This document shows, piece after piece, positions 1 through 7,217 of a stretch of 64,000 bases of DNA. Source of the stretch: Blepharisma stoltei ATCC 30299 (taxonomy: Eukaryota; Protista; Ciliophora). Within the stretch, counting starts at the first letter, position 1; each line of letters starts with the position of its first letter. The stretch lies in NCBI GenBank assembly GCA_965603825.1, contig CBFDEM010000015.1, positions 434,001-498,000 on the forward strand, given 5' to 3'. Made by a program: the position numbers and the translations under genes. The notes under the pieces were generated by a model. It was not told where the DNA came from and did not search any database. It saw only the letters and a list, made by a program, of their open reading frames with translations.

Positions 1-967
1 TTGGCGTATACTAATAGCTGATTACTCACATCTACAGCTCTCATACCGCACCTTTGGCCTTGCATCACATTTTCATTTGCTTTTCTTTCAATTTCAGATT
101 TTATTTGTTCATTTACATAACCATAAAACTCTCTCTTAATGTATTCTTCTGGATACTCTAGCTTTACTAAGGTTTCATTAGAAACTGAGACATTCAAGTT
201 GTTTAGCTCGCCCATACCTGGTAATTCTGCTATTTTGGCTAAGATTTCATTTTTGTAGATTTCAGAGACGATATCTCCATCAATGGCTTGTCTTTCATAA
301 AATTTACAAGGATGAGGGAAATGGATTATTCTATTATTGGCAATGATAATGTTAAAAACTCCATGCAAATTGGATCGAGGTTGATATCTTTTATAGCTAA
401 TGAAAAATCTTGGATATAAATTTTCATAGTAAATATCAAATAACAATTGTTCTTAAGTTCTTCGGTATGATTTTCAAAGAGTCTAAGTAATTGTTTCAAT
501 GAATTACGAAAGCCCACTGCTCTGCTCTGTATCTCATACTCGCTGACTATATATAGCAGAATTTTGCTTCGGCATAAGGAGAATACATTTAAGCAATAAA
601 ATGCATTGGCGAGGTCTTGACCCCATCCGTGAGTATCTTCTTGTCCAGGACAATCAATATATAGAATTCTTGTTCTTTGATTGTAATACAAATTTGGCTC
701 AGAGGTTTCTGAGTTCACACTATGACCAATAATTCCTGGGATTATCGAATTATCACGAATTTTTAGAATAGGGCCTCTATCTCCGTCTTGAACAATTAGT
801 TGATCTTCATTTAAAAGATGCAAAAGAGTCGTTTTCCCACTTCCTGTAGCGCCAAACAAGATATGAGTTTTCTGGATGCTATTTTGGTTGGCTGCATCAA
901 GTTTAACTCTGAAAGCACTGCCTTTAGATTTGACCTCGGAGAATACCTTTGCATCACAGTCGTTCAT
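1..967 (-). pseudogene. P-loop GTPase-like protein (AIG1/MMR_HSR1-like), frameshifted, 3' end degraded or running off the window
   Basis: Walker A GATGSGKTT and G3 DCPG. The ORF stops at 326, but a second frame continues (NNRIIHFPHP...EQIKSEIERKANE), implying a frameshift near 335-350. Likely start is the ATG at 967. Confidence 0.6.
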
Positions 968-1264
968 TTTTATGATTATTATCTTAAAATAAATGTTAAT
1001 CATTAATCTTTGTAACCATTTCTACATTTTTATATAAAATGATTAAAGATGGCATGCAAGAAATTTATTAAAAGGTCCACATTATAAAGAGCCCAACTAA
1101 CTATAAATACAGCCTAAGAATGAAGAATTGCGATTACCAGCAGTGCTTTAGCAAGTTTTAGAGTAAATGGAATCAAATTTCATTAGTTTAAACTTAAATT
1201 GAAATAATTTATAGTGATCAGCACTCTTTAATGACTTTTTATTTATCAAAACATCGATAATTAC

Positions 1265-2050
1265 TTGAAAGTCCTTCGAGTTGATAATTATATCATAAAG
1301 CTTCTAGAAAAGAAAAATTTTTTTATATGCTTGAAATATAAGAAAATAGACGAGACGGGTACGCTCAATACAGAACAGCAACTAGAAGAATTAAAGAATA
1401 GAATCTTACGCGAACGTAACAAAACAATGTTAGATAATATAATAAAAGATATGCAACAACATCCAGAAGGACAACGAATGCTGGTGATAGGGGCAAAACA
1501 TGCTAAAACACGAGCAAGGACATTGGACTCTCGAGGAGCAACTATAACTCTAACGGAACCATATCCCTCAGAGCATCGTTTAGGCAAGAAAGAAAAGGCA
1601 TATTATCTATTATTATCAGAGAATTGAGAAAAAGTGAAGCATCGTTGGAGGACCTATTAAATCAAAATGATCAAAGAAATATCAAGGTGCAGGGCGCAAT
1701 AGCGAATAAACGTACTGGGGTTTATAAACACGAGATTTAATTTTAACTGCAGACCACTCTCGTCTGCGACCAAAACACTGGGTAGAAGCGGGAATTGAAC
1801 AGCAAATGAACATGAGCATAGGAAGCGAAGAGAGCAAGACTCCAGAAATCAGTTTGGTAAAACCAGAAGAGGTGCAGCAACATAGTAATAAACTCTGAAC
1901 AAGCTAAATTAGCAGCTGCATGTAAGCAGGCACCATCGGAGATATTAAACACAGTACGCACATCATTTAGCACTGCATCAAACACAAATGTTGCAGAATG
2001 TGCTAAATATTTTCCACAAACACTAAGAACCCTGAGACTTGTCGCATAAT
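1265..2050 (+). pseudogene. Decayed ORF fragments of unknown, probably bacterial, origin
   Basis: Fragment RERNKTMLDNI...LVIGAKH resembles the C-terminal motif of TraB/GumN-like proteins. There is no proper start, and downstream fragments lie in shifting frames up to the IS. Confidence 0.3.
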
Positions 2051-2088
2051 GTAAATCGATAGATGTCACTTAATCTCTTTCTGTCATT

Positions 2089-3004
2089 TTGCGAATTATA
2101 TCATCTGCATGTAAAGCTATGGAATATAACAGAGATAGCTATTATATATTTAAAGAACTATATGAAGTAGGTGGTGAAGAAGCTTTAAACGAGATTAGTC
2201 GTAGAAAACCGATAATATCTAACAGAGTTGATCCTACTTTAGTAGCATTAGAGACGAAAATGGCTCAAGATGGCATCATTCTTACCGAAGCGTAATTACG
2301 CACTTTAGAAAAATGTAAATCTGAAAAAGAAGCTTACGGTGAGATTGAAACTGAGCATCCAGGTTATCTTGGCTCACAGGATGTATACTATGTAGGCACT
2401 TTCAAAGGCATAGGTAAAGTATATACTCAAACTTATATCGATACTTATTCAAGAGTAGCCGATTTTAAACTCTATAACGAGAAAATAGCTATTACTTCTG
2501 CCGATATGCTAAATGATTGGATATTACCTTTTATGAAAAAGAAGGTATACCTATACTTCGAATATTTACCGATAGGGGTGGTGAATATAAGGGTAATATA
2601 GAATATCATGCATTTGAACTATTTTTAAGTATAGAAAGCATAGAGCATACTACTACAAAAGCTTATTCTCCTCAAACGAACGGCATTTGTGAAAGATTTC
2701 ATAAAACTATGAAGGAAGAGTTTTTTGACGTAGCCAGAGGTCAGAAGATTTATAATTCTATTGATTTGCTACAAAATGATCTTGACGAATGGCTTTTGCA
2801 TTATAATTATGAAAGACCTCATTCAGGTAAATATTGTTATGGTAAAAGCCCTACGCAAACTTTTGAAGATAGTAAAAAACTTGCTCTTGAAAAGAATAAT
2901 GAAATTTATACCTTGAATATAAGCTTGAACAAAATAGTCAGAATTTTAGCGATAATATTGCTTGTTAGATTATGTTGTATATAAGTTAAGTCTTGACTAG
3001 TACA
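2089..3004 (+). mobile_element. IS481-family insertion sequence (Rickettsia ISRpe1-like), 5'-truncated, with a pseudogenised DDE transposase
   Basis: HTH remnant ACKAM.Y.RDSYY.FKELYE.GGEEAL; core ETEHPGYLGSQD.YYVG..KGIGKVY.QT.ID, TDRG.EY, SPQTNGICERFHKT, YN.ERPHSGKYC.GK.P. Premature TAA at 2293, a 1-nt frameshift near 2530 and an apparent internal deletion. Ends in AAGTCTTGACTAGTACA at 3004, a 5'-TGT terminal repeat typical of IS481. Confidence 0.9.
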
Positions 3005-3111
3005 TTTGAGGTTAGAATTTAAGTGCTTATTTTAGAATTTACACACATAAAAAGCCAGAGCCTTTTGCAACTTACACAAATTCTATTACAGACTCTACAG
3101 TTTAATATTTT

Positions 3112-3726
3112 TTATAAATCGATGTGACTGGTATCGCCAACGAGTTCGATTGCACACTGAATTTGCTCTGGTTCCAAGTTGATTAATTCGTTGATTTGCA
3201 GTCTTTGTGCAGCATACTTACTCATTGCAGTATCAGACAGTAGTATTTCCATTACTTTGATACTTATATTCGATGCTGAATGTATAAAATCTGTGTCATT
3301 GTTCAAATGTTCGGCTATATAATGATGTAATAGAGTTTGTAGTTTTATTTCATACGACTTCCTGATAAAGCTTCGTATTTCTTCATTACTGTGTGCATGA
3401 TACCATGCTCGCGCAGCTACTGTCATTAATAAATGCAATTCTTTAGTATGAAAGTCCTTTAATTCATCTGCTTTGATCCCTCGCCCATAAACCTCACTAG
3501 CTTCGTATGACAATAGGAGCTGCACATCTCTGATAGATTTACCTATTACATCAAGTATTGTTATACCTCTGGTCGCATAGCATACTCTTGCTGCAATGGT
3601 TGCTATGTAGAAAACAGCATTCTTATCTAGCGCGGACAATATACTTGGATCTAAACCTTGCTGTATGCACTCAGTTATAGCAGCGTTATCAATGAACTCA
3701 TTATATATAGTTGTATGATTACGCAT
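3112..3726 (-). CDS. Intact 204-aa hypothetical protein of Rickettsiales style
   Basis: Open ATG-TAA frame next to the IS481, with weak internal helical repeats (LLLS..A...Y). The C-terminus ...IELVGDTSHIDL resembles the tails of many Rickettsiales hypothetical proteins (inference). Confidence 0.55.
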   Translation of the reverse strand: MRNHTTIYNEFIDNAAITECIQQGLDPSILSALDKNAVFYIATIAARVCYATRGITILDVIGKSIRDVQLLLSYEASEVYGRGIKADELKDFHTKELHLLMTVAARAWYHAHSNEEIRSFIRKSYEIKLQTLLHHYIAEHLNNDTDFIHSASNISIKVMEILLSDTAMSKYAAQRLQINELINLEPEQIQCAIELVGDTSHIDL

Positions 3727-3982
3727 GTTTCTCGTTATTTTTTACTTATTAAGTCACTCTATTATACAATTTGTTGCATAGATAAAAAGAGTAAGTTTTA
3801 ATATGAGGCTAAGATATAAGTTTTTTTAATAAGACTTTTTGTATCATTTCTAATAGAACCAATTAATTTATATTTCTTAAAATTTATGAAGACCAATATC
3901 ATTAATCTTTTTATCATTTACTAATTCGAATCTAAAAAAATTTGGATAAATTCTCATATTGTCAGATCATATAAGAATTAAA

Positions 3983-4723
3983 ATGGCAACTCGCACACAA
4001 TTCGAAAACTCAAACGAAATCGGAGTATTTTGCAAACTTACCAACGCATACTGCTTAGTCCCAATAGGTAGCAATGAAAACTTTTACAGTGTCTTTGAAA
4101 GTGAGTTAGGTGGGCACATTCCAGTAATTCACTCCACTATAGCAGGAACTCGTATAGTAGGTCGAGTCTCTTGTGGTAATTCTAATGGTCTTTTGCTTCC
4201 AAGCATCACAACTGATGTAGAGCTACAAACCATTCGAAATTCTCTCCCAGATAAAATCAAAGTCGAAAGAATTGATGAAAGACTGTCAGCACTAGGGAAT
4301 TGCATAGCTTGCAATGACTATGTTGCTATAATTCACCCAGATTTAGATAAAGAGACTGAAGAAATAATCGCTGATACCTTAAAAGTCGAAGTTTTCCGTA
4401 CCATGGTAGCAGGAAATGTGCTAGTAGGGAGCTATTGTGTCCTTACAAACTTAGGTGGATTGATACATCCGATGATAGCTGTAGAAGAGCTAGACGAATT
4501 AAGTTCATTATTACAAATTCCATTATGTGCTGGCACTGTTAATAGAGGAAGCGATGTGCTAGCAGCTGGTCTTGTAGCTAATGATTGGAGCGCATTTTGT
4601 GGCCTCGATACAACGTCGACTGAAATTTCTGTGATAGAAAATATTTATCGACTGAACGAAGCAAAAACTTTAGGAGGCCCACAAGGGGTGAGGACAGAAT
4701 TGATGGACACTTATAAGAATTAA
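3983..4723 (+). CDS. EIF6: Eukaryotic translation initiation factor 6
   Basis: [16 protein letters not shown]...AGTVNRGS...[12 protein letters not shown]; ATG at 3983. Confidence 0.97.
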
Positions 4724-4737
4724 TAATGCTTAATTTC

Positions 4738-5676
4738 TTATTTTTTAGTTGGGAAGAAATAATCAAGACCATTGCGAATATGCTCAACGAGAGTGAAGGT
4801 AATCGCCACATCTAAAACTACTCTAGTAAGTCTTGCACCAGCTCCTTTATAGAATCCTCTTATTCCGTCTCTTTTAGCGATTGCAAAGAAGCAATGGAGT
4901 GATCCATTGTATTTCTTAGCTTCCAATCCTTGCATAATAGTTTTTACGACGTCAATAGGGTTGTTACCTAGCACAGATGCTGCTCCAGCTATAGCTCCTG
5001 ACAAAGCAGTTTGTAAAGTCAATGGACTGTTAGGGAAAGTCGTCTCAATAAATTTCTTGCATTCTCCATATACTAAGAATCTAATAGCCTGGTTTGAGCT
5101 TTGTCTAATTAAGGTTGGGACCACTCCTCTGTAGACTCCAGGGAACCCTTCAGCTTTATAAATAGTAGAAATTCCGTGGAAAAGACCTCTGTATTTAGGA
5201 GTAGGGCTCATCCTATCATGGATTAGTTTGACCTTCAAAGTTTCCATAGGAGTAACCACAAAAACTGCTTCAGTAGCTCCAGCACATGCTCCTGACAAGA
5301 AAGTGTTGAGTTTTCCAGGAGTGGTAAAGATGTACTTATCGTACACTTCCTTAGATCCAAACCTGGTGCCTGTCTTTGGGATTGAGAAGAAGAGCAAACA
5401 GGAAAGTCCTCTATATAATCCTCGAAAGCCATGAGCGTTAACTGTATCTTTTCCGACTTGGATTATTCCTGAACGCTTTTCAGGGTAGAGTTGTTGCATT
5501 GTCTTAATGAATTCAGTAGGATAGGTTATGCAAGCTTCAATACCTCCTGTGATGCCACCACTGAGAGTCGCTTTCCAGAAAACCTTGTCTTCACCATGCT
5601 TTGCAGGTGGGCCAGCACAATGAACAGGCTGAGGAACAAATGCACGAGTGAAAAAATCGAATAACCTTCCAACCAT
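4738..5676 (-). CDS. Mitochondrial tricarboxylate/citrate carrier (SLC25A1/CTP1-like)
   Basis: Three PxExxK/PxDxxK carrier motifs, plus TYPTEFIKT, TPMETLKVKLIHD and RQSSNQAIRF. Confidence 0.9.
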   Translation of the reverse strand: MVGRLFDFFTRAFVPQPVHCAGPPAKHGEDKVFWKATLSGGITGGIEACITYPTEFIKTMQQLYPEKRSGIIQVGKDTVNAHGFRGLYRGLSCLLFFSIPKTGTRFGSKEVYDKYIFTTPGKLNTFLSGACAGATEAVFVVTPMETLKVKLIHDRMSPTPKYRGLFHGISTIYKAEGFPGVYRGVVPTLIRQSSNQAIRFLVYGECKKFIETTFPNSPLTLQTALSGAIAGAASVLGNNPIDVVKTIMQGLEAKKYNGSLHCFFAIAKRDGIRGFYKGAGARLTRVVLDVAITFTLVEHIRNGLDYFFPTKK

Positions 5677-5981
5677 TTTTTTGTTGGTTAATGGAAAGAT
5701 TTTCATTTGAGGGAAATTAAGGTAAATGTTAGAAAGAATCTTATGATTAAAATAATTGGAAAATAATGCGGGTTTGTGGTGCTTTTGGGAAATAATTGAT
5801 AAGTAATAATTGATTGGAAGTATTTAATTAATTAGACATTATTTTATAAGAATGCTTTATTATTGATGAATTAAAGTCATTTTTGTGTAGAGTTATTTTA
5901 ATTAAAATATTATTACTTATAATATTAGATATCATAAAAATCTGCTCAAAGCAAAGCAAGTGAAATATTTTTATTTTTAAA

Positions 5982-7217
5982 ATGGATCAGAGTAAACATT
6001 TGTCACATGTCCTAAACGAGCTTCCTGAATGGGAATATGATTCTCAAATGCATGCTTTATTTTGTGAATATGACGGCGATGAGAGTGAAGAATTTATGCT
6101 AGAATTTTGGAAACGGGCAATCGATAAGGTCTTTAACAACTATATCCAATCATTACGATCAACAATAGATGAGCTTAGAGTTCTATTTGACAGAAAAGGC
6201 AGAAAACCATTAGGTCTTAGTGCAATTTGCAAAGCACTTGAGCAGAGAGGAGACTTGATTGATATAGATACCATCAGAGTAAAAGTCCAAGAAAAAAATG
6301 ATAAAGAGCTATCATGGGGTTCTTGGATAGGTAAAAAGCTCCTTGGAGGCTTAGGTGCAAAGCCACAGCCTACGAATATATTTGTGTGCAGAAGCAAAAT
6401 GCAAAAAATATCAAGAGATCTTATCAAATGAGCTAGAAATAGCAAAAGAACAATATATAAGCTCACTGAAATTTCTGATTATCTTCAGGAGTTTTTCCAC
6501 ATTCATGATGAAGAAGATGTAAAATTAATCCTAGACTATCTCTATATAGAAGCCCTAGCTTACAGTACTAAAGTTCCAGTATGTGGGAAAATGAGCGACA
6601 TAGTAAAAGTCAAGATCAATGAAGACGATGAGCTAAAAATAAAAGAAAAGGATACTGCGTGCCTAGCATTATCTGAAATTATCCAAGAGATTGACTCAAA
6701 AGTGTCTAAACTTGAATTGAATAAAGAAAAAATGAACGAAATGGTTTTAGCCAAAATCAGAAAAGGAGATAAGCTTGGAGCTAAGCCTTATTTGATAAGG
6801 AAGAAAATGATAGAGAAGAAAATCGAAGAACTCCATAGCAATAGAAATAACTGTGAGCAGCAATTATTCAGCATAGAAACGAGCCAAGATACAGTTGCAA
6901 TATATCATGCTATGAGAGAAGCTACTATTACTCAAGAAAATCAAAGATTAAATATAAATGAAGTCGAAGATTTAATGGAAAAAAACAAAGATTTATATGA
7001 TGAGCAGAGAGAAGTTTCTAATGCACTATCAGCAACGAATCCTGTAGAGCAACAAGAGTTATTAGATGAACTTGAGAAGCTAGACGCGATAGAATTACAA
7101 ATCGAAACACCACCAACGACCAAGCTTCCTTTGAAAAATATAGTAAGAGAGAGAGTAGAAGAAGAAGAAGAAAAGGTACCTCAAAGAAAGAGCAATATTG
7201 ATATGATTTTAGAATAA
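5982..7217 (+). CDS. CHMP7: CHMP7-like ESCRT-II/III hybrid protein (winged-helix N-terminus plus Snf7 domain), 411 aa
   Basis: ORFs 5982 and 6591 join in frame through TGA(Trp) at 6429. FWK..I and SWGSW motifs in the N-terminal part, Snf7 coiled coil in the C-terminal part. Confidence 0.8.

Follow-up and report, generated by a model that had tools for sequence, protein, structure and literature searches.

The window analysed here, 64,000 nucleotides of contig 15 (434001-498000) in the somatic, or macronuclear (MAC), genome of the ciliate Blepharisma stoltei ATCC 30299 (41.46 Mb, 64 contigs), contains a small island of foreign DNA between two divergently oriented host genes. The island comprises the relic of an insertion sequence (IS) of the IS481 family, two short pieces of other bacterial repeats nested beside it, and ORF204, an intact open reading frame (ORF) for a protein of 204 residues. 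This block (2089-3726) is bacterial over at least 1.6 kb. To its left lie about 0.9 kb of single-copy DNA and a host gene resembling P-loop nucleoside triphosphatases (NTPases), which is annotated as a gene in the germline record of the same contig; to its right the host gene for eIF6 begins after a spacer of 256 bp, where an initial annotation, made from the letters alone, had put about 250 bp. The island is continuous with host DNA on both sides in two assemblies, the MAC assembly and the germline assembly, which also carries internal eliminated sequences (IESs) and is called MAC+IES below.

The somatic assembly (41 Mb in 64 telomere-to-telomere contigs, built with Flye from PacBio high-fidelity (HiFi) reads) describes a genome with UGA as a tryptophan codon, tiny introns and short intergenic regions (PMC9942806). 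Base composition did not separate the island from its surroundings, and Rfam gave no match on the island. In the public annotation, ORF204 and two small island ORFs are entered as genes.

The IS481 relic and the repeats nested beside it

Matches to the NCBIfam model NF033577 (IS481 family transposase) came in three collinear pieces (2089-2292, 2296-2526 and 2517-2981; E 2e-6, 2e-13 and 1e-34), which correspond to positions 16-65, 109-180 and 182-284 of the profile; the gene being broken, each piece taken alone falls short of the model's cut-off of 224 bits. Pfam found HTH_29 (E 3.6e-6) and rve_3 (E 3.5e-15) in these pieces, corresponding to an N-terminal helix-turn-helix and an rve integrase core, an architecture (helix-turn-helix plus rve DDE core) that the relic shares with the ISRpe1 / IS481 transposases of Rickettsia, Ca. 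Tisiphia and Ca. Lariskella. Measured against an intact Rickettsiales copy of 364 aa (L071:1133-2227), the relic lacks residues 1-22 together with the left inverted repeat, has lost 153 nt after 2242, carries TAA at 2293-2295 where bacterial copies encode Gln, and has suffered 1-nt deletions after 2528 and after 2905. With these five disabling lesions the transposase reading frame is not open. The nonsense codon, an internal deletion and one frameshift had been listed in the initial annotation, and all three recur in this alignment; the second 1-nt deletion (after 2905) is an addition to that list.

The right end of the relic is intact, as had also been proposed: its ...GACTAGTACA (2995-3004) can be aligned both with ...TTAACTTCTACA, the IS end of the copy in 'Holosporaceae bacterium Namur', and with the inverted repeat of a Niabella copy, and the right terminal inverted repeat ends ...TACA in the relic and the ISRpe1 / IS481 copies alike. 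The left inverted repeat was looked for in the window and not found, so a target-site duplication of IS481 is unreadable; the relic is a truncated remnant, not a complete element.

The nearest protein cluster is named ISRpe1 / IS481 family. Named relatives from exact look-ups and plasmid BLAST were Rickettsia peacockii ISRpe1 and the copies on R. felis pRF and an R. bellii plasmid, with further relatives in Rickettsia endosymbionts of insects, Ca. Tisiphia and Ca. Lariskella (~75% nucleotide identity), consistent with the Rickettsia-type transposase that was first proposed. Across ISRpe1 / IS481-family copies, identity to the relic is about 73-77% at the amino acid level and ~75% at the nucleotide level; the relic differs from them in being dead and in lying in a eukaryotic chromosome, and no sequenced bacterium holds a close copy. 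The first genome match was 'Namur' (77% amino acid identity), and in a wider search many genomes of that order matched at about 75% nucleotide identity. A Holosporales donor was dropped from consideration, as 'Namur' is placed in the order that also holds Rickettsia felis, Tisiphia and Megaira, and every other match with a name is to Rickettsiales. In the 'Namur' genome itself (JACGYV010000003.1) the IS481 copies are fragmentary, and the record name Holosporaceae may mislead.

The strongest evidence for a bacterial origin is the stretch immediately to the right of IS481. Window positions 3004-3063 are 90-93% identical (E down to 1e-18) to the last 60 nt of element B, as we call a repeat, roughly 170-670 nt long, that is present in at least seven copies in Ca. 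Megaira polyxenophila (G132) and in one copy in a second genome (G040). Element C, which follows, is the end of an IS256-family element (1383 bp in full, with a 423-aa IS256 transposase) that occurs in at least 15 copies in the Ca. Tisiphia endosymbiont of Sialis lutaria (G232) and in at least 16 in another genome (G366), often at contig ends. In the window, the IS256 end lies 15 nt beyond the stop codon of ORF204. The order of the joints shows element B to have entered the IS256 end first, 35 nt from its outer edge, and IS481 to have entered element B afterwards. Rickettsiaceae symbiont genomes typically contain such nested piles of ISs, and the one formed by IS481, element B and IS256 is a signature of a Rickettsiaceae genome. 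The transposases of the ISRpe1 group, the Ca. Megaira polyxenophila repeat and the Ca. Tisiphia IS256 thus agree with the Rickettsiales donor that was originally suspected.

Only one other IS481 locus was found in the B. stoltei genome, on contig 51 (677571-678229). Each of the two relics has the other as its closest relative (85.6% identity over 418 sites), and against five bacterial copies both show the same derived changes. Their 60 differences fall 14:12:34 by codon position (chi-square about 14.8, 2 degrees of freedom), an uneven spread which implies that part of the divergence arose under selection on the transposase, i.e. in bacteria, and which thereby makes two inserted copies a better account than a duplication within the ciliate. 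Substitutions found in the window copy alone (5.7% of sites) are spread 9:7:8, evenly, as under neutral decay, in numbers that are small. The contig-51 island (676109-681999) contains an IS481 relic with an intact N-terminal ORF of 154 aa followed by a stop codon and a truncation, together with an orphan ORF of 133 aa; its neighbours are a cathepsin-like gene and a non-LTR retrotransposon whose reverse transcriptase has a YADD motif. In a search for a germline version of that island, its ORFs were not found on the record. A third bacterial IS relic in B. stoltei, a frameshifted IS256 fragment on contig 17 (195638-196101), has 39-41% identity (E 1e-15) to the IS256 transposase of Tisiphia.

Table 1 Features of the island and its flanks, in window coordinates.
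Feature	Position	Strand	Remarks
Host P-loop NTPase-like gene, last part (left flank)	326-1003	-	Start codon at 1003; from the ORF list, with weak P-loop Pfam matches
Single-copy DNA including ORF120 (1265-1627, +)	1200-2088		Unique in the genome; foreign or host
Junction of 134-bp palindromic IES	1287-1293		Direct repeat ATTATAT; only in MAC+IES
Junction of 589-bp IES	1338-1340		Nested BogoMITE-like copy, 88.8% identical to the IES at 3746
Junction of 446-bp germline-only segment	2052-2079		50% GC; long imperfect direct repeat; 10 bp left of the IS481 relic
IS481-family (ISRpe1-group) relic	2089-3004	+	5'-truncated, 153-nt deletion, TAA, two 1-nt deletions, intact right inverted repeat
Element B, terminal 58-60 nt of a bacterial repeat	3005-3062	-	90-93% identity to Ca. 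Megaira polyxenophila copies; IS481 inserted in it
Element C, outer 35 nt of an IS256-family element	3063-3097	-	88-94% identity to Ca. Tisiphia copies; interrupted by element B
ORF204, intact, all-helical protein of ~30-residue repeats (204 aa)	3112-3726	-	Rickettsiales-type bacterial relatives (phmmer); AF2 model
Junction of 384-bp BogoMITE IES	3746-3748		TTA; 20 bp upstream of the ORF204 start codon
Host eIF6 (right flank)	3983-4723	+	Pfam eIF-6, E 2e-79
Host mitochondrial carrier gene	4738-5706		After eIF6
Junction of 353-bp IES	6168-6177		Only in MAC+IES
Junction of 1539-bp IES	6569-6571		In or beside host genes; C-run inverted repeats

ORF204 and the left part of the island

In a phmmer search of 1.8 billion representatives, the best homologue of ORF204 was a protein of 202 aa (34% identity, E 3e-20) encoded on a short contig with a 4-nt overlap with its upstream gene, in bacterial style. 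Weaker matches were to repeated units in giant proteins, those with names coming from Ca. Jidaibacter, Rickettsia endosymbionts of beetles and alphaproteobacterial metagenome-assembled genomes (MAGs), such that every relative with a name or genomic context belongs to Rickettsiales, an alphaproteobacterial MAG or a bacterial-style contig. Judged by these matches, ORF204 is of Rickettsiales-type bacterial origin, in keeping with the earlier description of one intact bacterial-style ORF at 3112-3726.

The alignment contains a repeat of ~30 residues (L..L....I..L.S..A...Y..G) in about six units, and the AlphaFold (AF2) model is all-helical, with a predicted local distance difference test score (pLDDT) of 86.8. 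We read ORF204 as a putative small helical-repeat protein of a kind common among symbiont effector-like proteins. It had no match in Pfam, NCBIfam or a word-indexed search of 5.8 billion proteins, no relative in 151 plus 10 Rickettsiales genomes and no match among sequences in the PDB. Foldseek against the PDB returned no significant neighbour (the best rows being designed helical repeats and transcription activator-like effectors, E above 0.1), and a structure search of the Atlas returned only template modelling scores below 0.5. Exact-protein look-ups placed ORF204 only in the two B. stoltei assemblies, a result that an eIF6 control shared, so that this index cannot test other species. The same ~30-residue repeat forms long arrays in proteins of 600-1900 aa from Ca. 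Jidaibacter, Rickettsia endosymbionts and alphaproteobacterial MAGs. No Pfam family covered it in the six such bacterial proteins scanned, and it would seem, from these sequences, to be a repeat family of intracellular alphaproteobacteria that has yet to be described.

The state of ORF204 raises the question of whether the island has been partly domesticated, with ORF204 now a working ciliate gene, perhaps transcribed from a bidirectional promoter region of eIF6. The ORF is intact at nearly the length of its 202-aa bacterial homologue, its predicted fold is confident, it stands head to head with eIF6 across the short spacer, and it is publicly annotated as a gene. At the lesion rate of IS481, its chance of remaining open under neutral decay is roughly 0.04, calculated as 0.3 (no new stop at 5.7% divergence) x 0.13 (no insertion or deletion) on the assumption that all IS481 lesions arose after the transfer; those lesions may instead predate it, in which case most of the force of the argument is gone. 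ORF204 also has neither a paralogue nor an orthologue for a test of selection, lacks host-type features, having neither a tiny intron nor an in-frame UGA, and has a germline BogoMITE 20 bp from its start codon. We consider domestication improbable.

To the left of the IS481 relic, the evidence for bacterial DNA gives out. The initial annotation had seen decayed fragments flanking the relic in a bacterial island, and for 1200-2088 our searches did not bear this origin out: protein and DNA searches of 401 Rickettsiales genomes, protein databases and the Atlas gave no match, and a local tblastx against the collected loci and a search for PF01963 in five genomes returned nothing beyond the sequence itself. 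The sole bacterial sign is a sub-threshold match of ORF120 to the TraB/GumN C-terminal domain (E 1.6e-4). Since the gap of ~3 kb between the divergent start codons is long for a gene-dense genome, a foreign origin of 1200-2088 is plausible.

The germline record of the island

The counterpart of contig 15, CAJZBQ010000015.1 of GCA_914767885.1, belongs to the annotated MAC+IES (germline) assembly, according to the preprint of the germline paper, and is 913,618 bp long against 694,643 bp in the MAC. IESs in that assembly were called by aligning continuous long reads (CLR) enriched for micronuclear (MIC) DNA to the MAC assembly, requiring at least 10 supporting reads and alignment on both sides of the insertion. 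When the corresponding region (L070) was compared with the window by blastn, the aligned blocks were 98-100% identical, all except three short ones at 100%; within the island the range was 99.5-100%. The comparison of MAC with germline that the initial annotation had suggested thus finds, in the assemblies, the same island plus four germline-only segments in or beside it.

These four segments differ in kind. BogoMITEs, a family of MITEs (miniature transposable elements with inverted repeats) in this species, have a C-rich inverted repeat of ~30 bp, a TAA/TTA duplication and a length of about 389 bp (PMC9942856). The 384-bp IES fits this description: it has a C-run plus TCCGTGAGCGAACAAA repeat at both ends and is flanked by TTA. 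The 134-bp IES (L070:758-891) is an almost perfect hairpin palindrome, for which Rfam gave only spurious microRNA-like matches, and is probably one of the small palindromic MITE-IESs reported previously (PMC9942856). The 446-bp segment (L070:2268-2713), whose GC content compares with 33% for the genome, is bounded by a direct repeat (16 bp exact, about 28 bp imperfect) and contains no ORF; it had no match in Rfam, plasmids or the 401 Rickettsiales genomes. It lies directly against the 5' side on which the IS481 relic is truncated and so may itself be foreign, a further fragment that, in this case, is eliminated. The bacterial block 2089-3726 is itself present in the MAC and hence is not germline-only, as an IES would be.

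Because the MAC+IES record carries both the island and the IESs, the island would be linked physically to germline-only DNA. Since the IESs were called from reads aligned across their sites, molecules with IESs at 2052-2079 and 3746-3748 should also carry the IS481 relic and ORF204, and the island most likely resides in the germline. As no IES lies within 2079-3746, the lesions of IS481 are then also germline lesions. The same reasoning makes both an assembly artefact and a capture confined to the soma unlikely.

Ciliate cultures often carry Rickettsiales, and a stretch from a co-sequenced living symbiont might be spliced into a ciliate contig by a chimeric assembly. The stretch is short (1.6-2.9 kb) and is enclosed by host genes within one long contig, so that, with HiFi reads of up to about 12 kb in the MAC library (PMC9942806), two independent false joins would be needed. 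Moreover, the IESs immediately beside the block, at 2052-2079 and 3746-3748, come from a separate MIC-enriched long-read library, the IS481 copy is heavily broken, and a second, diverged relic lies on another contig beside a host non-LTR retrotransposon and a cathepsin-like gene. We regard contamination of this kind as very improbable. Alternatively, bacterial DNA might have been ligated into an IES-excision break in a developing macronucleus and have persisted only in the MAC of this strain, which has long been grown vegetatively; the IES junctions, 10-20 bp away at either end of the proven block, would allow this. IES calling needs germline reads aligned on both sides, and the IES-bearing reads should therefore carry the island; the amount of decay, in addition, fits an old event and is hard to reconcile with one clonal MAC lineage. 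Somatic capture seems to us scarcely credible.

With four IESs in about 3 kb, the region is near the average for the genome, which at about 40,000 IESs in 41 Mb comes to roughly one per kb (PMC9942856). The nearest junctions are found just beyond the proven block, 10 bp from one end and 20 bp from the other, a closeness that may be more than chance and that we offer only as a lead. One tentative and rather unlikely extension of germline residence is that the bacterial DNA entered a germline-limited spot (an IES or a transposon-rich one) and was later made soma-destined, the segments at 2052-2079 and 3746-3748 being old IES remains. The authors of the germline study conjectured that foreign DNA without target sites for the excisase may be marked but not excised (PMC9942856). 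If the extension were true, the island would exemplify, in nature, the elimination system treating foreign DNA as 'self', possibly for want of excisase sites.

History and significance of the island

We assign a probability of about 0.85 to the reading that a genome fragment of a member of the Rickettsiaceae (Megaira/Tisiphia/Rickettsia group) was joined into the B. stoltei germline, where it is decaying, and is kept in the soma, most likely without function. Under this reading, a fragment of the chromosome or of a plasmid of a Rickettsiaceae endosymbiont would have joined germline DNA of B. stoltei or an ancestor, presumably by end joining, in the divergent promoter region between the P-loop NTPase gene and eIF6. 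The arriving fragment would have carried IS481 within the short repeat within the IS256 end, 15 bp downstream of a small repeat-protein gene. After arrival it would have behaved as ordinary nuclear DNA, subject to neutral decay and with host IESs beside the proven block on either edge, and the bacterial stretch would reach the somatic nucleus for want of any signal to excise it. ORF204, still open, would then be part of an island that is most likely functionless.

Several observations weigh against this reading. No known bacterial genome is close to the IS481 relic, with at most 77% amino acid and ~75% nucleotide identity. For the 0.9 kb on the left, no bacterial relative was detected, and the extent of the transfer and its left junction are thus provisional. 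No IES lies within 2079-3746, and the IESs only flank the proven bacterial block. Finally, ORF204 is intact beside a wrecked IS481, which, at the rough chance of 0.04 given above, could hint at selection.

The initial annotation had concluded that endosymbiont DNA was integrated and survives into the soma, and had called this retention unusual. With host genes on both sides and the block present in the MAC assembly, the first conclusion stands for the proven block, the left third of the range first proposed (1200-3800) being not demonstrably bacterial. The block is indeed kept in the soma, but its retention is less exceptional than was claimed, as the Blepharisma MAC already holds retrotransposon sequence (PMC9942856). 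Those retained retrotransposons resemble the island in being mobile-element DNA that is not removed and that has IESs cut out of it or beside it; the island differs in its bacterial source, in being single-copy and in being incapable of transposition in the host.

The island is a new instance of a known phenomenon, endosymbiont-to-host transfer. Nuclear insertions of Wolbachia and other Rickettsiales in arthropods and nematodes are likewise rich in mobile elements, decaying and mostly non-functional. Like the B. stoltei island, they are fragments of obligate intracellular alphaproteobacteria; they are joined to host germline DNA, where the island most likely resides too. Unlike them, the island lies in a ciliate with separate germline and somatic nuclei, is flanked by IESs and passes through developmental DNA elimination. 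In text searches, neither of the two B. stoltei genome papers was found to mention bacterial islands or IS481.

For the biology of Blepharisma, the relic would record that the lineage once harboured Megaira/Tisiphia-like Rickettsiaceae, or ate hosts that did. Our search of the Blepharisma literature found no such association; Megaira has been assembled from another heterotrich, Stentor roeselii (PMC10132079). With the relics on contigs 51 and 17, the island on contig 15 suggests that symbiont DNA repeatedly reaches B. stoltei chromosomes, and we propose that ORF204 and the two small island ORFs be flagged in the public record as of foreign or uncertain origin. Such relics, datable, non-mobile and clearly foreign, may serve as markers of how DNA elimination treats new DNA, which in this case has been kept, with IESs beside it.

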